Positions 1-15,900 of a DNA stretch of 16,836 nt are shown in pieces. The notes beneath the pieces were generated by a model that did not search any database, was not told the DNA's origin, and was given only the letters and a program-made list of their open reading frames with translations. The stretch is from the NCBI GenBank assembly GCA_024626585.2, contig JANKJI020000002.1:32228848-32245683 (forward strand), in the 5' to 3' direction. Within the stretch, counting starts at the first letter, position 1, and every line of letters begins with the position of its first letter. Source of the stretch: Ginkgo biloba. Taxonomy: Eukaryota; Plantae; Ginkgophyta. The position numbers were made by a program, and so were the translations under genes.

Positions 1-28
1 AGAGAGAGAGAGAGAGAGAGAGAGAGAG
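1..28. repeat. (AG)n microsatellite, cut by the window edge
   Basis: Perfect AG dinucleotide run over 1-28. Confidence 0.95.
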
Positions 29-57
29 TGTAATATGCTGACGTGTAATATGCTGAC
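28..57. repeat. 15-bp perfect tandem duplication
   Basis: GTGTAATATGCTGAC occurs at 28-42 and 43-57. Confidence 0.9.
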
Positions 58-252
58 AAAGGTGTAAGACCAACTAAGAACAAAGTAAGGTTGCATGTGA
101 GATTGCCATGGGTGGAAGACCAAGTAATGATGTGAGAAGAGGACCATAGGCAAGCCAAAACCAAAATCAATAGAAGTGGAAAGCTTTAAGCCAAGCAATG
201 AGACATTCACAATCATTCTTTAGGTAATACTTGGGTGAGACATTGAGTCTAA

Positions 253-655
253 AGGTGGGGGGAGGGGGGTAGATGTTAGGCCATTTGATGTGTGAGATGA
301 ATTATAATGTGTTATTATTATCTTTTGTAACTCGGAGAGTGATCCCCTATAACTAAATATATTAGGGTTAAATGAAGTGAATGTAAAGATTACTTGGGTG
401 GTTGTTTAACTCCCCAATTGAATGGCAATTGTATTAAAAGGGCATATTGAGGAGAGAGTAAGTGTGCAATTGAGGAGATCATTGGCATAGGGATTGGAGA
501 TCATATTATACTCTTGGCATCCCCACTAGGGGTTGCCAAGCCTCTCTTATACTCAATTAATAAGCAATGAATCCCTTGTGTGTATGTTGCCATGACTTTT
601 CCATGTGGACGCTAGTTCTATATTCAGTGGAGTATATGTAGTTCTACTCCAAACA
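253..655 (+). mobile_element. Polypurine tract plus 3' LTR (274-655, about 382 bp) of a Ty3/gypsy retrotransposon
   Basis: G-rich PPT (AGGTGGGGGGAGGGGGG) lies just before TGTTAGG at 274. The element ends ...CCAAACA at 655, giving TG...CA termini with a 6/7 inverted match (TGTTAGG vs TGTTTGG). A TATA-like TATTAAAAG lies at about 433. LINE sequence begins right after 655. Confidence 0.65.
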
Positions 656-679
656 TTGTAATTCTTCTATTAACAAAGA

Positions 680-3600
680 ATATACAAAACACTTACCAAT
701 GTGAGGGTTTTGTTTTCTTTAGAAAGGGCATTGACATTCATTTCATCACACATCATTAATGAACACATCTGGCATTGAAACCTAACTCCATATAGATGAT
801 ATGACTTTGTTTGGGCCGATGTCGAATTCATAAGTAATAACATGACTTTGTGGAAATCATAAAAGGCTACTCGATGAGAACATTAAACTTTGTAAGCAAT
901 CCATAAAATGATTACCCAAAACTCCATTTGTGATTTCCCAACCTCTAAGCTAGGTTGAATTCCCTTGTCCTTTCTACAGTAAACAATTTTCTTCCCTTGG
1001 AAACAAAATACAATCCAATAGATGTAAATTGGACACCCAAATAGATGTAAGAGGTGGTGGTATCAATAATCTGTCCTTTGAAGGTGAACTGGAATTTCAA
1101 CAAGGTATCTTTAGTCATATTAAAATCCATAGCCTTAGTTTTGCTAAGATTGACTTCCAATCTCGTACTATCACAAAACAAAGCAAGGGAGTCTTATTGT
1201 CTCTGTAATACCACATAAGTGGATGAAAGGAGGACAATGCCATCTGCATAAAGGAGAACAAATTTCAAGAACTAGTGTAAAAGACAACCATCATCTGCAT
1301 GAGTGGTCTCTCTGAGTTGTTGCTCAAGCTTGGGGGGCATCATTGCTTGACCTTAGATGTCTCTAGAGAACACTTGTGAGTATGTCTAATACGCTCTCAT
1401 CACAATTGTAGTAACAATCTCAGGAACTACAAGTGCCTAGTTTCTCAAAAAGGAGATGTTTGGGAATTGTGTCAAAAGCTTTCTGAAATTCCACAAACCG
1501 ATAATAGACTTTGGAAGATTGCTATCTAGCCTCCTCAATAATAGCCTTGAGAGTGAGAACACAGTCAATTGTTTCGTGGTCTTGACAAAAGGTTTCCTGA
1601 TAGCTCTAGAGGTTGAACTCTCTATCCACTCTGATTAATATTCATCAATGGCTGTGGCATAAACTTTGGGCAAAGTATGGCCTATCATGATGGTTCTATA
1701 GTTCCTTGAAATTGATGTATAACTTGACTCATGGATGAGATGGATGATATGATGGGTCCAAGATGCGGGAAGCTAGATAAAACAACTTCATTGAATAATT
1801 TGACAATGGGATGAGTAAGGGGGCCTATGCTTTGCTCCAAGAATTTAGATTGGAGGCATTCTATGTTTGTAACNNNNNNNNNNNNNNNNNNNNNNNNNNN
1901 NNNNNNNNNNNNNNNNNNNNNNNNNNNNNNNNNNNNNNNNNNNNNNNNNNNNNNNNNNNNNNNNNNNNNNNNNGCTCACTTTTATATCAAACTATTTGTT
2001 CATTTGTTCATTTTTCAACTTTTTGTTTTATTTACTAAACTCCTTCATTCGTTCATTTTTCCATTCATCAACTGCTTCATTCGTTCGTCTATCGGATGAA
2101 GGCACTTTGAGCAAACTGATAGACAGTCACTAAAATGAACGTAAATTTCAACTTGTAGCTCCATTTTTTGTAAACTTGGTACCAAATCGAATATTACTAT
2201 GAAGGATACAACTTTGATTCATTAACCATAAGCTAAAAATATACGATTTTTTCCCAATTTTGTCTGCAATTTGACTGTCCTAAAAATGACAGGAAACAGT
2301 TTTGATCTGAAAAACGGATCACAGCTTTCTTGGTGTATAGTTTGCCAATGGATTTGTGGATAATGTTGGGCTTGAAGAAATAACATGAAGTAAGTTGGGT
2401 TGGGACCTATGTAGGAGTTTTGGTTGGGGCCATTGTAAAGGGAGGATGCCTGCAGACCAAGTTGTGGGATCAATAATGTGGCAAGGAAATTTTTGTGGTA
2501 AGGAGGTTTTCTGAAAATATTTTGGTGAATTTCTTAGTGCATAGAGGATTTCATTTCTCCTAATCCAAAGATATTGACTTTTTTATCTTCGTAGGAGGCG
2601 ATGATATTCTCTATGATTGTCCATACCTTGGTTTGGATGATGGGTCAAATCTGTCGAGTTTTTTGTGGAGGTGATTATAGTCATCGTTGAACCAATTATT
2701 CAAAGGGAAATATCCAGGTTTGTGAAAAAGTTTGGGGTGATGGATGGTGTGAGGGAAAGGATTTTGGGCAACTTTCCAAAGAATCTAAGTGAGGAACTCA
2801 GATTTAAGCAATGTCGAATGGAGTGCATTAAAGGTTGGTAGAAGTTGAGATATATTCTCTTGATAGCAGTGTCATAAGTGTAGTCAAAATCAATGGTTAT
2901 ATGTGACTGAGGTGGATTGCGAGGGTGGTATTGGAAAGTGTGAAAGATAGATAAGCATGGTCTGCCTGGGGAAGTTGTGAGGAGACTCAAAGACCAACGA
3001 GTTGGGTNNNNNNNNNNNNNNNNNNNNNNNTACTCTCCCTTTATGAGGATAACATGAGGAGGCATTAGACCCAGGGAAATTGGGGAGGTCATTCAAAATG
3101 AATAAATTATGAGACAGACCAAGATTAAGAAGATGATGTCCATAAGCATGGAAGGTGTATTGGAATTTGTTGATTGTCTCTTGATCCTAAAGTCAACGTG
3201 TTCCAACTCATAGCTACATAATTCGTTCTCTGTCTAGTCACGAATAGGCACTTGGCGAGTGCTTGTGTGGGAATTAAAGTCCACTAGCAGGATACCATCA
3301 CCCTATGCTGAGAATCATGATATCTTAGGATATAAGTCTAAGAAAGGGTCCCCTTTTATGTGAATTGCAAAGTCTGAAGAATCAGGTGGGGAGTAGCAAA
3401 CAACACTAAAGACATCCTTGCATGGGAGCCTATAGGAGCTCGAAGCCACAAGAACTTGGAAGTGTTCATTTGAAGGTACCAACTTCATTGAATGAAGTTG
3501 GCCTGTGACTAAGTAAGCAACACCACCTCATCCCTGAAATCCATCAGATTTACTAATTTCCTGTTGGGAAACTGAAATACAATGATATCCTAAAATGGGG

Positions 3601-3720
3601 GTAGGGATCTCTTTGAACTCATGAGTTTCCATAAAAAAGATAAGGTTTTGCTCCTTGATGACATCATAAATTGTACTAGGTGCCGTCCAAATAAGACCAT
3701 TACAATTCCATCAAGCAACA
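680..3720 (-). pseudogene. LINE ORF2 relic (APE endonuclease + reverse transcriptase)
   Basis: Endonuclease: WNCNG at 3710-3696, GILLVDFNSH (GDFN-like) about 3295-3265, ADHAYLS about 2965-2945. RT: NYRTIMIGHTL about 1703-1670, EFQKAFDTIP about 1492-1462, VLLYADGIVLLS with YADG at 1250-1239 (catalytic YADD mutated), VNLSKTK...YIYLGVQF in ORF 945-1181, IIYMELG about 800-780. Confidence 0.9.
1974..2323. mobile_element. Unclassified non-coding insertion inside LINE ORF2 (LTR- or TIR-like fragment)
   Basis: It interrupts LINE coding between HWQTIHQE (right of 2323) and LQSKFLE (left of the gap). It has TTCATT(C/T)GTTCA repeats and AACTTGTAGCTC/TACAACTTT motifs, retains more CpG than the flanks, and ends ...GATCACA. 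The left edge is hidden in the N gap. Confidence 0.5.
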
Positions 3721-3782
3721 GGAAGTCTCCTTGAGCTCCCCCCAATGGCATGGCATCAATTAGATAGAGGCCATGGACAATT

Positions 3783-5585
3783 TCATCCTCTAGGAAGCGA
3801 GTCTTGTATCCAATCTCTACCATTGCATATGAATTCTCATTTCCCATTCTTTGTTGCTTCAATTACTTGTGCTCTAGTTTTTCTAAGCTCTTCACATTGC
3901 AATTGTATAAGTCTTCATCAAGGAAAATTGTCTTCAAGAGTGAAGAGTTTCTTCTTTGCTCTTTAGAATGTCTCTCCTATCCTTCGCAGATTTGAACCAT
4001 ACCAAAAGGACAGAGGCTGGGGTGAACATGATCTGTCCAAGGAAATGTTTGTTAAGTCAAAAGTATCATGCAGGAATTTGGTTGATGTTTCTATGGGATT
4101 TTTGGATTTTGGGAGCCGTCTAACCCTTAATGCTTTGGGCTGCCTAGCTCTTTTCTTCATCAAAATTGGCTTTAGCCATTTCCACAACCAGAGGAATTTT
4201 TTTCCATTTGATAACTTCGACCCAGGAGCTTTGTTCATGAATTCATTTTTGTTTCTNNNNNNNNNNNNNNNNNNNNNNNNNNNNNNNNNNNNNNNNNNNN
4301 NNNNNNNNNNNNNNNNNNNNNNNNNNNNNNNNNNNNNNNNNNNNNNNNNNNNNNNNNNNNNNNNNNNNNNNNNNNNNNNNNNNNNNNNNNNNNNNNNNNN
4401 NNNNNNNNNNNNNNNNNNNNNNNNNNNNNNNNNNNNNNNNNNNNNNNNNNNNNNNNNNNNNNNNNNNNNNNNNNNNNNNNNNNNNNNNNNNNNNNNNNNN
4501 NNNNNNNNNNNNNNNNNNNNNNNNNNNNNNNNNNNNNNNNNNNNNNNNNNNNNNNNNNNNNNNNNNNNNNNNNNNNNNNNNNNNNNNNNNNNNNNNNNNN
4601 NNNNNNNNNNNNNNNNNNNNNNNNNNNNNNNNNNNNNNNNNNNNNNNNNNNNNNNNNNNNNNNNNNNNNNNNNNNNNNNNNNNNNNNNNNNNNNNNNNNN
4701 NNNNNNNNNNNNNNNNNNNNNNNNNNNNNNNNNNNNNNNNNNNNNNNNNNNNNNNNNNNNNNNNNNNNNNNNNNNNNNNNNNNNNNNNNNNNNNNNNNNN
4801 NNNNNNNNNNNNNNNNNNNNNNNNNNNNNNNNNNNNNNNNNNNNNNNNNNNNNNNNNNNNNNNNNNNNNNNNNNNNNNNNNNNNNNNNNNNNNNNNNNNN
4901 NNNNNNNNNNNNNNNNNNNNNNNNNNNNNNNNNNNNNNNNNNNNNNNNNNNNNNNNNNNNNNNNNNNNNNNNNNNNNNNNNNNNNNNNNNNNNNNNNNNN
5001 NNNNNNNNNNNNNNNNNNNNNNNNNNNNNNNNNNNNNNNNNNNNNNNNNNNNNNNNNNNNNNNNNNNNNNNNNNNNNNNNNNNNNNNNNNNNNNNNNNNN
5101 NNNNNNNNNNNNNNNNNNNNNNNNNNNNNNNGTTTGGTTCCCCTAACTTCCACTAGATTGGAAATGTATTCACCGATAAGCTTCACTGTCTTGGTCAAGT
5201 TCCTTTGTGTTTCATTTAGTGGGCTCGGTGGTCCTTAACATTGGCAGTGACCTCATCTTCTCATGTAGGCGCATTGCTTACAACAATATTATCCAGGTCA
5301 AACATCCAGAGGGAGGTCGGAAGGGAGAGGGAGAGAGAGAAAGTCTTACACTACTTTATTGAGGTTGATCATTTTGTGGAGTGGACTTCTCATCTCTTCT
5401 TGCTGTGTATTCGGGCTAGCTCCAACAATTGAGTTTTCAGACTTGCAAATGCTCTCCTGTTGTCCACCTTAGGCTTCCTTTGGAGAAATCGCTTTGCATA
5501 CTTGCCTCTCTTGAATCGGGTTCCTCCACTTCAATCTCTGTTGTTTGTTTGGGCAATTGATCCATGTCTTTTTGGTGGTAAGTGT
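3783..5585 (-). pseudogene. LINE ORF1 relic (interrupted by an N gap of about 875 nt)
   Basis: C-terminal frame fragments LLVWFKSAKDRRDILKSK...TIFLDEDL...QVIEATKNGK(*)EFICNG...PRG* end at TGA 3785-3783, just upstream of the EN domain. A possible N-terminus (LPPKRHGS) lies near 5580. The 5' part is poorly constrained. Confidence 0.55.
4257..5131. other. Assembly or masking gap (largest of several N runs)
   Basis: Other N runs lie at about 1874-1973, 3008-3030, 7806-7905, 9305-9328, 10050-10324, 11845-11944, 12941-12957, 14151-14182 and 14433-14887. Confidence 0.98.
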
Positions 5586-5676
5586 GATCCAAACAATACT
5601 ACCGATCTTCCTCTCTTTGTTTTGTAAGCTTTGCATTTCACACACTTGACCTGAGCAAAATGATTCTCCCAATTGC

Positions 5677-5684
5677 ATTTATAG
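5677..5684 (-). promoter_or_regulatory. TATA box (CTATAAAT) at the 5' end of the LINE
   Basis: Minus strand reads CCCCTCTATAAATGC, a canonical plant TATA context, about 100 nt upstream of the putative ORF1 start. Confidence 0.35.
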
Positions 5685-6093
5685 AGGGGAATGGGGAAGA
5701 TTTCTTTTGGCTCAAGATATGTCCCCATGTCTAGAGCTGTGTAATTTGTTGCAAGTTGTCCTACAAGATTAGAGGTGCCAAAGTCTGAGCACTGCATCAT
5801 CTACTACTTCATTGTTTATGCAGGTTGATTTTTTTGGTAGCAATGCCAAACCAGTGTTAAAAACTCTTGTTTGCAACTACCAAGGCTGTTGGATTTAAAT
5901 TGATTTGATTTATAATTGATTGCAGGAACAGTCATTGGTAAAGCCATGTTAACACATGCCATTTTGTTCATATGATTTACATTATTTCCTAGCTCTCCCC
6001 ATATGCAAGATGTTTGGTTCTTAACACTTAGCTCTTACTCCACTCGATATAGTTTGTGATTAAGCACACAAAGTGACAGGGTTCCTAGTCTTC

Positions 6094-6133
6094 ATGGAGT
6101 GTTTTCGGGTCTTTAATGGCGGTGTTTCCATTG
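6094..6133 (+). CDS. Exon 1 of CINP-like gene (MECFRVFNGGVSI-E)
   Basis: ATG at 6094 and donor G|GTGGGA at 6134 (phase 1). An upstream acceptor GACAG at 6075-6079 suggests a further upstream intron. Confidence 0.5.
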
Positions 6134-8914
6134 GTGGGACCATGTGAGGAAATGATCCATTTTGATATGGCACATCCATAACAACATCAATTGCCATAAA
6201 AGAGTTTCCCATTAATCTGCAGAACACGAATTTGAATCAAGTGCCTTAAAGTGCTTCAATTCTTTGACTAGAGTGGTTAAAAATAAGCAATTGCATGTTG
6301 GAATGAATCCTTATCCTTTTCAGTAGTTTGTGAATGTGTATGAACTTTCCCTCTTCTTTATCGGTTGGATATTCATGGCAAGTTGAATGAATTGAATTCC
6401 ACACTTGCTTCTCACGAAACTTATTCGTTAGCCCCCCCTTTTTTTTTCCGCCCATTTGAAACATGTTTCTTGTAGAATGTGATTGTATTCCCTTAGCATA
6501 TTGTTTGGCCACATTCTGACAGAGTTCATCCCTTTACTCTCTTTTATCCAAATTTGAAGGTTTAATACACATTCTAAGCTATCCCAGTATCATTAATCAA
6601 TCATAATGACCCAGGTTTCTGGGCTGCTGTTGCAAATAAAGGTTTTGATGGAAGTCATGCCATCAGGACAAGTATCTACTGAAATTGTGCTATTTGAGAG
6701 AACTTTAGAGCCCATAAATGTCTCCAATATTAATAGAAAAAGAAACAAACTATATATGCTATGAAATTGCTCCACAATATTATACATGTAGTTGAACTAA
6801 ACCCTAAACTAGCAAGATGCATATGTAGAAGTATGAGTTGGCCTTCTATGAAGATCACCACAAATTCAACTATATCAATGATTTTGGACTTTTGCAGTAA
6901 CAAATAGTCCTCTTGGGTGTCACTATTGATGGGAGTAGTTAATTGCCTCTGATTATCAGTGAATAGACTAAAACCATCCTCAATCCCTTCATGGACCTAG
7001 TCAAAGTTATGAAGTACTATATATGCACATAAATCCACACACTTTATAATAACTACTAACCTCTCCCAAGTAATATTTAATATAATATCAAGGTTCATTT
7101 ATATCATATAGTATCACATCCACTTTAATGATACTTCTAAATCTTCTCTTCTCATTAAGACTCTATACAAAATTGAAATGGACACTTGAACTATCAATAT
7201 CTTGTCAACTCCAAAATAATTATTCAAGGAATCCCATAATATATCCCTAATTTAATATTATTGATTTCAATTTATTCAATAAAATACCTCATTATATTTA
7301 TATTATTATCATTATCATTAAGATATAATACATGGCCTATATTTAGAGTTGTTATTCCATGATAACCCATGGCCTAGATTTATAGTAATTACTTTAACAA
7401 AAACATCTAAATTCAATTTCCTTTAAATCCCTATTAGTATGGTTTATTTGATCTCATTATACCTTTTAAATAATACATTTTATTAATAAATTATTTTATG
7501 TATTTAAAGGACCTATCTAGCTCTTGGATACCATATTATGAGCATGGGACATGCCCACCTCATGTGAAAAATATATAAAATTATTAAAATGAAGAGTTAT
7601 ATAGGAATACATTTACAAATATATTAGTATTATGGTTTTATTCCCCTCCTTCCTATAATTAATATATCTTATTATATATTATTAGATATTAGTAGAACCC
7701 AATAGATCCATTATTAGTAGTTTATTGACATCTGTAGTCAATCTAGATCTTAACCCATTTACATATAAATAACAAATTTGATCCCAAATCATATACCATA
7801 TCTAANNNNNNNNNNNNNNNNNNNNNNNNNNNNNNNNNNNNNNNNNNNNNNNNNNNNNNNNNNNNNNNNNNNNNNNNNNNNNNNNNNNNNNNNNNNNNNN
7901 NNNNNGTTTATTAATGATATATTTGAGTGCTTAATGATCAACATAAAACTCAAACTTATTACCCAAAAGATAATATAATAACTTCTATACAAAATATATC
8001 ATTCTCAAATCTTCCTACTCTATTGTGGAGTAATTTATCTCAATCTTAGACAAATTTATGCTTACAAAATATATGGGATGGTCAATTTTACTAGCCCTCG
8101 ACTGTGCTAAAATTGAATTAATCATAGTCATTGAAGCATCCATATTTATATGGAAGGTCTCCTTACAATTTAGAAATTATAGTATATGAGATTCAAATAT
8201 ACCTTCAATTGATCAAATTCCTCTTGTAATTTATGGATCCACATAATCTATTCCCTCCAAAATGTACTGTCTACTTGATTGCTAGAATATATTGTGCTTG
8301 AAAAATACAGTAAGTCGGAGAGTAGAATCTGCAAATTTTACCTTTTTTTTTGAGGTAGTCATGTTTCACTAGCTCAGTTGCATTGAATGGGCCTTAAATA
8401 TTTGAAGAAAGTAGCAGCATTAGAACCAGTTCCTTATGACAGAATATTGCAAGTAAAACTGATTTGTTAGAAACTACTCTTCTTGCTAGACCTTTTGAGC
8501 CAAAGATATTGTTGGTTTTTCAAAACTTCTGTGGGTTGTATGACTACGTTATGATTCATTGGCAGGGAAGTATTCTTCTTGAAAGTGGTCATAGGTTGGA
8601 AATTTCTGACTATATGGGAATGATGTCAGTAATTTGTGGCATGTTAAGGCAAGACTATGCAATGCAGGTAACGGTTAAATCTTAATATTGTCCAGGTATT
8701 TGTAGTTTTGCTCACTGCCATTATGCATTTTAGTTTCTACAGAATTAAAAACCCATTGATCACTTGAAGATCTGGCTTGAATTGGCAGGAGAGGGTTGTT
8801 TCTGCCTTGCAACTTGACACGCCTTCAGAAACACTTCAAAGCTATTGCTTGATGTGGACCTTGCACCCATTTATGGATGAAAGAGTCATCAATGAGGCAT
8901 TGAAGTGGATATGA
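6094..8914 (+). CDS. Intact 8-exon host gene, about 167 aa, CINP-like (CDK2-interacting protein / 55LCC subunit-like) helical protein
   Basis: Phase-consistent GT-AG model with exons 6094-6133, 6223-6275, 6523-6559, 6615-6671, 8311-8354, 8408-8452, 8566-8667, 8789-8914 (504 nt, no internal stop). Protein: MECFRVFNGGVSIEHEFESSALKCFNSLTRVSSSLYSLLSKFEGFWAAVANKGFDGSHAIRTISRRVESANFTFFFEKVAALEPVPYDRILQGSILLESGHRLEISDYMGMMSVICGMLRQDYAMQERVVSALQLDTPSETLQSYCLMWTLHPFMDERVINEALKWI*. The last three exons are strong and match a conserved uncharacterised plant family as I recall it (DY.MQER.V.AL...SYCLMW.L.PF). The 5' exon boundaries are less certain. Confidence 0.75.
6223..6275 (+). CDS. Exon 2 (E-HEFESSALKCFNSLTRV)
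   Basis: Acceptor CTGCAG at 6222. The only open frame is phase 1. Donor GTG|GTTAAA is weak. Confidence 0.5.
6523..6559 (+). CDS. Exon 3 (SSSLYSLLSKFE-G)
   Basis: Acceptor CTGACAG and donor AAG|GTTTAA (phase 1). Confidence 0.55.
6615..6671 (+). CDS. Exon 4 (G-FWAAVANKGFDGSHAIRT)
   Basis: Acceptor CCCAG and donor AA|GTATCT. The W......GF pattern resembles human CINP WETLNDAGF. Confidence 0.6.
6900..7800 (-). mobile_element. Highly decayed LTR-retrotransposon remnant in intron 4, with tRNA-iMet-like PBS at 7520-7533
   Basis: Minus strand reads TGGTATCCAAGAGC versus the canonical PBS TGGTATCAGAGC. The surrounding sequence is very AT-rich, with a faint gag-like ITWE on the minus strand near 7070. 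Limits are approximate. Confidence 0.4.
8311..8354 (+). CDS. Exon 5 (I-SRRVESANFTFFFE), preferred of two possible exons
   Basis: Acceptor TACAG at 8310 and donor GAG|GTAGTC (phase 1 to 0). An alternative exon at 8286-8309 also fits. Confidence 0.5.
8408..8452 (+). CDS. Exon 6 (KVAALEPVPYDRILQ)
   Basis: Acceptor TTGAAG (alternatives at 8414 and 8417). Donor CAA|GTAAAA, phase 0 into exon 7. Confidence 0.7.
8566..8667 (+). CDS. Exon 7 (GSILLESGHRLEISDYMGMMSVICGMLRQDYAMQ)
   Basis: Acceptor TTGGCAG and strong donor CAG|GTAACG. Lies inside ORF 8464-8685. Confidence 0.88.
8789..8914 (+). CDS. Terminal exon 8 (ERVVSALQLDTPSETLQSYCLMWTLHPFMDERVINEALKWI*)
   Basis: Acceptor TTGGCAG at 8788, in phase with exon 7. 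TGA at 8912-8914. Confidence 0.88.
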   Translation, partial: ERVVSALQLDTPSETLQSYCLMWTLHPFMDERVINEALKWI

Positions 8915-10412
8915 AATGTTTTCATTAGTGAGCACTGCTTTTGTAATCATCTTAGATTTTTGTCCCTCGTTATTACAAAATGTACCTGTATAATTTTTTT
9001 GTAGACATGCAATGCGTAATCTTCTACCATATGCAATTGACTCTGCGACTGTTCTGGGTTTGAACTCAATAGAGAATGATAAAAGAAATGTGCGAGGAAA
9101 CTTTATTTTTTCTAAACAATGCATGGAAGAATTACGGAAGTAGAAGTATTCTGTTGAATCGGTATTGAACTGTTGGATAATTTGTCGTCCATTGTGAAGG
9201 GCAAATTTGTATAAACTTTGGCAGATCAAAATATGTTCTCTTTATGGCTCACGAGTCCTTGGCTGATTCCTTCCATTTTGCCTCACTGAAGAATTCGTTC
9301 TTTANNNNNNNNNNNNNNNNNNNNNNNNTTATGGGTTCATTTATATCTCACGCTCTATTATTCTGAAAGGCAAGTTTTTACGAGCTTTGTAGACAGAGAG
9401 GCTTTGTATGTTTATTCTTGCTTGAAAGTATCTCTCCGGTACGTTTAAAAATAATTTGGCCTCGTTTTTTTTAACTTCCTTCTGGAGTTTTTGAAATGTT
9501 GTGATATCATCTATATAGATTATTTGAAATCATGGATTTATTATAAACTTGGGAGATGCTTCTGTGCAAATTCAACAATTTCTCATACACTAGAAAATAC
9601 AAAATTAGGATGATAACAAGCATTTTTAACCTTTCTTTTTGAATAGAACATAATCTTTCATATTATCTATTCACCTTATAGGCTTCATGTATTGGCCATA
9701 AGTGTTGAACCTAGTGCCCCATACATGATTACACTTTACCATTTGTCTGTTCTTAGGAGCATTACAATGATAACAAGTATTGCAAAGTCCATAGAATTGT
9801 AGCAAAAAGGAGGAAAATATTGTACTCTAACAAAGGGACAAAGCCCAAGGCTACCAAGGTTGTATCATGGCCTTTGTGCTCCTTGGTAAAGAACATGGCT
9901 CTCCATATCCATTCATGGTACTTTATGTTCGATGATAATGAAGATGATTATTGATACCCTAGTTCCGTGGATAGTACCTACAAGAGAAAGTAATAGACCT
10001 TTGCATGGCCTAATAATTTGAACATGAGAAATAGCTTGCTTACTAATGGNNNNNNNNNNNNNNNNNNNNNNNNNNNNNNNNNNNNNNNNNNNNNNNNNNN
10101 NNNNNNNNNNNNNNNNNNNNNNNNNNNNNNNNNNNNNNNNNNNNNNNNNNNNNNNNNNNNNNNNNNNNNNNNNNNNNNNNNNNNNNNNNNNNNNNNNNNN
10201 NNNNNNNNNNNNNNNNNNNNNNNNNNNNNNNNNNNNNNNNNNNNNNNNNNNNNNNNNNNNNNNNNNNNNNNNNNNNNNNNNNNNNNNNNNNNNNNNNNNN
10301 NNNNNNNNNNNNNNNNNNNNNNNNAGCGACATCATATACATACTTGAAGACACTTGATAGGATTATAATGAGCATATACCTTAGTTTACCTTGAGGGTGA
10401 TAATGCCTTAAC

Positions 10413-13309: not shown

Positions 13310-13880
13310 GCATTTAGAGATATTTTTAGTTGGCCTTACTTAGAAATAGGTAGAATGGACCCCATAGTAGTTGTGCACAACATTATTGTACAAATTAGTG
13401 TTAGAGGCCAACAAATTCAAAGCTTTCTCCTACCATTAAAAAAAGAATGAAAAATCTCTTGGACACCTATTTTATGTGTCGTGTTGACTTTATTGAATGG
13501 ATCACCAACGCAGTACCCATTGAGAAGAAAAATGGTACCATTAGGATTTGCATTGCTTACCATGACCTTAATAAGGCATGTCCAAAGGACAACTACCCAA
13601 CTCCCCTTATTGAGGAAGTTATTGATTTCTTTTCCAATTACTAATTCTTATCACTTAATGGATGACTTTTAATGTTATAATCAAATCCTTATTTTCAAAT
13701 GTGATAAGGCAAAAACCACCTTCACAAATCCTTAGGGGCACATTTTCCTTCGCATCATGCCATCTAACTTTTGGAATATTAGGGTAAGCTTCTAATGAGC
13801 AATGAATTTGGCTTTTCATAACATTACCCCAAATGTTGTTGATGCTTTCTTTGATGATTTGTCCAACAAATCACAAAAAG
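13310..13880 (+). pseudogene. Gypsy reverse transcriptase relic
   Basis: IFSWPY...MDP..VVHNI; WITNAVPIEKKNGTIRICI.Y.DLNKACPKDNYPTP; YNQI; KTTFTNP*G; FFDDL (YxDD box, DD at 13853-13858). Confidence 0.93.
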
Positions 13881-13937: not shown

Positions 13938-14206
13938 TTGAGACCAGTGTCACAAGGATGAGAATCTATGATAAACACATGGTTGTCCATGAAAAACTGA
14001 AGATGACAAAAGTTGAAAACAATTGAGATCAATGCCACAAGGATAAGAATCTATGATAAACACATGGTTGTCCATGAAAGACTGAAGATGACAAAAGTTA
14101 AAACTTAAAAACAATTGAGATCAATGGCACAAGGATAAGAATTTGTGATANNNNNNNNNNNNNNNNNNNNNNNNNNNNNNNNATGGAAGATTGAAGATTA
14201 GAAAAG
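13938..14206. repeat. Tandem repeat of about 85 bp, about 3 copies, in an insertion after the RT
   Basis: Units start TTGAGA at 13938, 14023 and 14115. Core CACAAGGAT(G/A)AGAATCTATGATAAACACATGGTTGTCCATGAAA.ACTGAAGATGACAAAAGTT. The third copy spans an N gap. Confidence 0.9.
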
Positions 14207-14887: not shown

Positions 14888-15900
14888 GGCCAAAAGAATA
14901 TTGAATGATCACCATGTTAGGGCATGTGGGTAGTCATTTACTTATCTTGCAAATGTCTACAAAAATACTACATATAGAGTTTCTATCCCACAAATTTCTT
15001 AGATTGCTATGTTGTAGTCCAATGCTATTTTGATTATCATTTATATAGTAAGAAAGATGATAGCCCCACATTGCCATTGTATTTTATCACATATGTTGAC
15101 CCCATCGTCTAATGGTGAATAGATTTCATGGAGTGTCGACCCCCTTATTTGACATTGAAAAATACATCATAGTTCTAATGGACTATTTTATCAAATGGAT
15201 TGAAGTAATACCCCTCACAAAAATAATGGCCATACAATCACCATGTCCATATTCAATCACATCATTTGTTGATTTGGCATCCCTAGCTAGATCATCTTCA
15301 ACCATAGTTCACACTTTGTGAGAAAAATAATGAGGGAGTTATTTAAATGTGACATAGATCATGTTAAATTCTCACCACAATATCCCTAATTAAATGATTT
15401 GGTTGAAGTAGTTAACTCAATAATCAAAACAATGGTTTAATGAATTATTTCATAAAATAGATGTGATTGGCACCTTAAGTTATATTCATTTCTTTGGGCA
15501 TATCATACTTCCATGAAGGCAACAACAAGGTTCCCACCCTTCTACAACCAAGATGCATTTCTACCACTACAATGCAAGGCCATATTGTATCTTTGTCAAA
15601 ATTGAATAACTTGATGAAAGCCATCACAAAGATCTATTATACATAGAAATCATAAAAATGACCATAAAGGCTACTTATAATTACAATTCCAGACCTCATT
15701 GATTCTACAAGGGCAACCTTGTGCTTGTCTAGGATCAATCTACTAATAAGAGGGGGGCGAGAAAACTCAATCCAAAATCGCATGTTCCATACATTATCAG
15801 TTCTACCTTGATTCAAGATGCATATAACCTCATTTACCATGATGGATTCCTTTATGTTGAACTTGTCAACAAAGTTTACCTATAAAATTTTTACACTTGA
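14888..15900 (+). pseudogene. Gypsy integrase relic (zinc-binding region + rve core)
   Basis: ILNDHH.ACG; W*IDF; YIIVLMDYFIKWIEVIPL; NHIIC*FGIP; SPQYP..N.LVE; DWHLKL..FLWAYHTS. Confidence 0.9.

Follow-up and report, generated by a model that had tools for sequence, protein, structure and literature searches.

Human CINP belongs to the 55LCC complex, SPATA5-SPATA5L1-C1orf109-CINP, which has a 4:2:2:2 composition with two C1orf109-CINP dimers and docks through CINP on GTPBP4 and ES27A (PMC12019325). A 55LCC-like complex of plants, OPNR-OAP1-OAP2-CDC48D-CIP111, has also been published (PMC12332008; Wang et al. 2025), and its adaptor, in contrast to the human dimers, is a three-protein 1:1:1 assembly. 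Here we describe a locus in a 16,836-nucleotide stretch of Ginkgo biloba DNA (the window; assembly GCA_024626585.2, contig JANKJI020000002.1, positions 32,228,848 to 32,245,683 of the forward strand). With a probability of about 0.9, this locus is the 3′ end of an intact, expressed gene for OPENER-associated protein 2 (OAP2, DUF7795).

The Arabidopsis proteins OPNR, OAP1 and OAP2 are purified together as a 1:1:1 trimer (~80 kDa) that is found in association with the AAA+ ATPases CIP111 and CDC48D and, in vitro, binds RPL24C (PMC12332008). The evidence on Arabidopsis OAP2 consists of co-immunoprecipitation, the recombinant trimer, an RPL24C pull-down and lethal mutants; in the mutants RPL24C, NOG1-1 and BUD20 are retained in the cytosol (PMC12332008). 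OPNR (At5g43822) is the separate plant counterpart of C1orf109/AIRIM (PF15011), and the human counterpart of OAP2 was left unnamed in the 2025 paper (PMC12332008). An earlier, sequence-only reading of positions 6094-8914 had proposed an eight-exon gene for a 167-residue CINP orthologue from an uncharacterised plant family, and from it a four-subunit plant 55LCC complex. The gene is real, but it was wrongly modelled there and is already characterised in Arabidopsis, where the family is OAP2/At3g49645. The outline of a plant 55LCC holds, but four subunits must be rejected in favour of the five of the published complex, with its 1:1:1 trimeric adaptor (PMC12332008).

Two coding exons, their transcript and their family

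The features that we assign to the locus are as follows:

5132-8565, plus strand: upstream intron of at least 3.4 kb, with no spliced RNA seen and no family match; it contains the six upstream micro-exons proposed earlier
8566-8667, plus strand: penultimate coding exon (exon A) of the putative OAP2 orthologue, 102 nucleotides, 34 codons, phase 0/0, AG before and GT after
8668-8788, plus strand: last intron, 121 nucleotides, GT..AG, phase 0, its joint present in raw reads of run X21 and in X2 and X8
8789-8914, plus strand: last coding exon (exon B), 126 nucleotides or 41 codons plus stop, with phmmer matches, a family profile match and RNA cover
8915-9368 (at least), plus strand: 3′ untranslated region (UTR), spanning a small N gap at 9305-9328 and covered by X8, X2 and X21

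Reads were mapped to 5132-10049 only. Within this range, raw poly(A) reads of run X21 splice exon A to exon B (2 reads, 1 start), and the same joint occurs in RNA contigs of two further studies, X2 and X8. The fit of both contigs starts at exon A and then splices to 8789. Their RNA status is a guess by the read-mapping tool; contigs that are spliced can only be RNA. The RNA contigs differ from the window at 0-1 positions over 560-680 nucleotides of coding and 3′ UTR letters, the frames and splice sites of exons A and B are intact, and DNA depth is single-copy (~8) across 8221-10049. At the 3′ side X8 fits 8785-9368 and X2 reaches 9250, with X21 raw reads in the same bins. At the 5′ side X2 and X8 extend ~395 nucleotides beyond exon A, and none of this extra sequence fits anywhere in 5132-10049; the preceding exon is therefore not among the candidates proposed earlier. 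As judged by eye, 30 of these extra letters are open in the frame of exon A.

Exon B alone, compared by phmmer with 50%-identity representatives, matched 49 proteins at E ≤ 0.001, with 71% identity to the best full-length match. The named matches that we looked up were all from plants (Cryptomeria, Psilotum, Sphagnum, Physcomitrium, Marchantia, Nymphaea and other angiosperms), apart from a low-complexity scallop match (P0022), which was discarded. Exon B scored 72.7 bits and exon A 26.0 bits against the family profile. The closest full-length relative found is the unannotated Cryptomeria japonica LOC131061570 (XP_057851300.1, P0002), which ends at the same residue and shows 71-77% identity over both exons, including 77% between exon A and its residues 163-188. 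Exon B carries the conserved Y..MW.L.PF motif and the last helices, and the C-terminal residues quoted in the earlier reading are present in the sequence. Pfam scans of the single exons gave no match, Pfam being without a model for the OAP2 C-terminus, and a search seeded with the divergent member P0010 matched only itself.

Full-length relatives have ~220-240 residues with DUF7795 (PF25071) in the N-terminal half, and the domain is present in 82 of 82 aligned members. The Arabidopsis member (P0190) is UniRef A0A1I9LMB9, a 241-residue protein labelled OAP2/At3g49645 in the supplement of the published study; its computed mass is 27.7 kDa, compared with 28 kDa as published (PMC12332008). It shares the C-terminal motif with exon B, which is 41% identical to its last 41 residues (pairwise E 5e-12). 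The Arabidopsis gene has seven exons, of which the penultimate is 102 nucleotides long in phase 0/0, and its last intron lies at the same codon as here, such that the last two introns (phase 0) and the 102-nucleotide exon are common to both loci. The intron upstream of that exon differs, at 91 nucleotides in Arabidopsis versus at least 3.4 kb here. Together with the closeness to Cryptomeria, this long intron points to a gymnosperm. Since Arabidopsis OAP2 has seven exons and two are found here, about five are missing from the window's read letters; we infer that these exons, with roughly 145-165 codons, are located either to the left of base 1 or within N gaps, for example 4257-5131. Judging from its relatives, the encoded protein would have ~220-240 residues, with most of its exons outside the read letters, and the upstream intron probably takes up the whole left part of the window.

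Some smaller observations concern the same genes. The X2 transcript contig carries an A>G difference at 8831 (Thr to Ala, exon B codon 15), which is not in X8 or X15 and is probably an allele. X8 (RNA) and X15 (DNA) both span the N gap at 9305-9328 in the 3′ UTR and put its true length 9 letters over the estimated 24. On Arabidopsis chromosome 3 (L002:2001-5362), the gene directly downstream of OAP2 encodes a dihydrouridine synthase (Dus), and fused OAP2-Dus gene models are found in Brassicaceae; these fusions may be the source of the misleading label 'FAD-binding protein'.

Fold and relation to CINP and C1orf109

The encoded protein is predicted to be an all-helical bundle with the CINP/C1orf109 fold. 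We used an AlphaFold model of the Cryptomeria member, which has a predicted local distance difference test (pLDDT) score of 79; Arabidopsis OAP2 folded from its single sequence gave a model of insufficient quality (pLDDT 47). CINP and C1orf109 chains filled all of the top nine Foldseek places and were ranked first by VIA-align, and most of the chain of the model, a helical bundle, can be matched to the solved structures of CINP and C1orf109. The lead of the fold alignment was Cryptomeria isoform X4, which is ~14 middle residues short, and the fold matches may be slightly under-scored. The last three helices (167-194, 201-213 and 219-227 in P0002 numbering) are encoded by exons A and B.

In sequence comparisons with the PDB, the only match of the C-terminal profile was CINP, at a weak E of 0.29, which becomes ~2e-6 for a single named target by division by the library size. 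The same profile gave no C1orf109 match, and neither the full-length profile nor exon B alone found CINP. The ungapped match that the sequence-only reading had claimed between this C-terminus and that of CINP is real in the C-terminal comparison. Human CINP (PDB 8CIH, 8RHN, 9LGO, 9GWJ) has ~10% structural identity to OAP2, with a profile E of ~0.3. The PDB structures and the C-terminal motif lean to CINP, whereas Atlas searches lean to C1orf109-like clusters. By ESM Atlas features OAP2 is nearest C1orf109 clusters (0.91-0.93, in a search limited to Pfam-named clusters), and among Atlas structures a plant C1orf109-like cluster is matched at a template-modelling (TM) score of 0.66, with no CINP cluster listed.

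We give roughly even odds to the view that OAP2/DUF7795 is itself CINP-derived. The plant adaptor would then hold one C1orf109-type and two CINP-type proteins (OAP1 and OAP2), an arrangement like the human dimer of dimers after duplication and reshuffling, and some of CINP's docking on the pre-60S subunit, namely the NOG1/GTPBP4 contact, may fall to OAP2. It is rather unlikely that human CINP has its one-to-one plant orthologue in OAP2 instead of OAP1, with OAP1 as an extra subunit. The text and Supplementary Fig. 7A of PMC12332008 pair OAP1 with CINP, and the failure of the full-length OAP2 profile to find CINP and both Atlas results also speak against such orthology. What survives of the proposed CINP subunit is a CINP/C1orf109-fold adaptor of a plant AFG2-type AAA+ complex, but the one-to-one pairing belongs to OAP1 in the published account (PMC12332008).

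Completeness of the gene and the upstream region

Several points weigh against the assignment of the locus to an intact, expressed OAP2 gene. Raw-read support is thin, with 18 RNA reads in total and 2 over the A-B joint. The N-terminal PF25071 domain is not in the window's read letters, as searched with the six-frame profile and the candidate exons. The proposed role of the gene, that of encoding the OAP2 subunit of the adaptor, is carried over from Arabidopsis by orthology. Finally, the locus could be a truncated duplicate or pseudogene fragment of two OAP2 exons, the RNA then stemming from an intact and almost identical copy at another place. In favour of such a fragment, the 8.5 kb to the left of exon A yielded no upstream exon, and the scaffold is broken up, with one doubtful join. 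However, the near-identity of the RNA contigs over coding and 3′ UTR letters, the single-copy DNA depth along 8221-10049 and the intact frames and splice sites of both exons all argue against a fragment, and long introns are usual in such large plant genomes. We therefore consider this explanation improbable.

The last two of the eight GT-AG exons proposed earlier (8566-8667 and 8789-8914) are real and spliced in RNA, but the six upstream are without RNA or homology support. RNA splice mapping confirmed the A-B joint; among the six upstream exons no joint was seen in the mapped range, and the depth of raw RNA reads was zero over 5132-8411 (18 reads mapped in all). The only contigs from RNA runs in the upstream region are from X2, at a depth of 2.4-4.3, and pass unspliced over proposed borders at 6508-6717 and 8391-8590. 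The first of these intervals includes the piece encoding FWAAVANKGF, and the supposed echo of CINP KWETLNDAGF at the N-terminus is thus intronic sequence. A search of all six frames of the window with the DUF7795-family profile matched nothing except exons A and B, and the best of 2269 candidate AG/ATG..GT pieces in 1-8565 reached 2.5 bits, none matching the family.

Because the earlier reading gave no exon coordinates, its exact chain is not reproducible, and chance was tested with any six-exon chain of the needed length. There are 162 stop-free AG..GT pieces of 37-126 nucleotides in 6094-8565, and a six-exon stop-free chain of the required length can indeed be built from the region. Such chains were also obtained in dinucleotide shuffles, in 16/40 from the first ATG and in 30/40 from any of the first six ATGs. 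The 167-residue model is an artefact of free exon choice, because comparable chains arise in 40-75% of shuffles and no upstream piece matches the family. Given also that the RNA 5′ of exon A is a different sequence, that the samples tested lack continuous DNA over part of the region, and that homologues have 220-240 residues (in seven exons in Arabidopsis), the eight-exon model is refuted as the main isoform, and a gene lying wholly inside 6094-8914 is scarcely conceivable.

The doubtful part of the assembly contains the following:

6718-8220, no strand: suspect assembly segment including the N gap 7806-7905, in place of which the samples tested have 326 other letters
8018-8176, minus strand: decayed long terminal repeat (LTR) retrotransposon RNase H fragment (Pfam RT_RNaseH, E 1e-8), inside the suspect segment

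A DNA contig of run X15 (4743 nucleotides) fits 6366-6717, continues with the 326 other letters and then fits 8221-10049, and breaks in two X2 contigs fall precisely at 6717 and 8221. In those samples the sequence on either side of 7806-7905 therefore does not follow on as the assembly has it. Pieces 6697-7091 and 7078-7805 of the assembly lie on other contigs, with overlaps of no more than 21 and 14 letters with their neighbours. Our preferred reading is that 6718-8220 is probably a chimeric gap fill; alternatively, it may be an insertion allele. No coding frame runs across the gap 7806-7905, and the segment is intronic under either reading. Part of it (7920-8083) is a high-copy repeat, with a DNA depth of 852 versus ~8 alongside. 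Other findings near N gaps of the same assembly may share the problem of chimeric fill.

The window as a whole is plant DNA rich in AT and full of repeats, and it contains ten N gaps. Positions 13405-13870 and 15150-15900 (both plus strand) look like decayed LTR-retrotransposon reverse transcriptase and integrase-like remnants; a Pfam scan of two pieces from them gave no match. By eye, there is an AG microsatellite at 1-28 and, at 13960-14150, an imperfect direct repeat of ~70-80 nucleotides ahead of the gap at 14151.

Proposed role and evolution of the adaptor

By analogy with Arabidopsis, the encoded protein would form a 1:1:1 trimer with OPNR (C1orf109-like) and OAP1, and this trimer would sit on the N-domains of the CIP111-CDC48D AAA+ hexamer. 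On pre-60S subunits fresh from export, the trimer would bind the placeholder RPL24C by its tail and pass it on to the ATPase. NOG1 and BUD20 would thereby be freed and 60S maturation could be completed.

The locus extends OAP2, with conserved intron positions, to Ginkgo biloba, in a family that reaches liverworts and mosses. It also connects OAP2 and the CINP fold with the Pfam family DUF7795, whose database label 'FAD-binding protein' is wrong. The C-terminal comparison gives a first sequence-level hint that OAP2 lies on the CINP side of the CINP/C1orf109 superfamily. Two human studies restrict the complex, one calling it eumetazoan-specific and the other calling CINP a human-specific factor, while CINP-like proteins are reported from Asgard archaea. 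Against this background, a CINP affinity of OAP2 would bear on the evolution of the adaptor ring.
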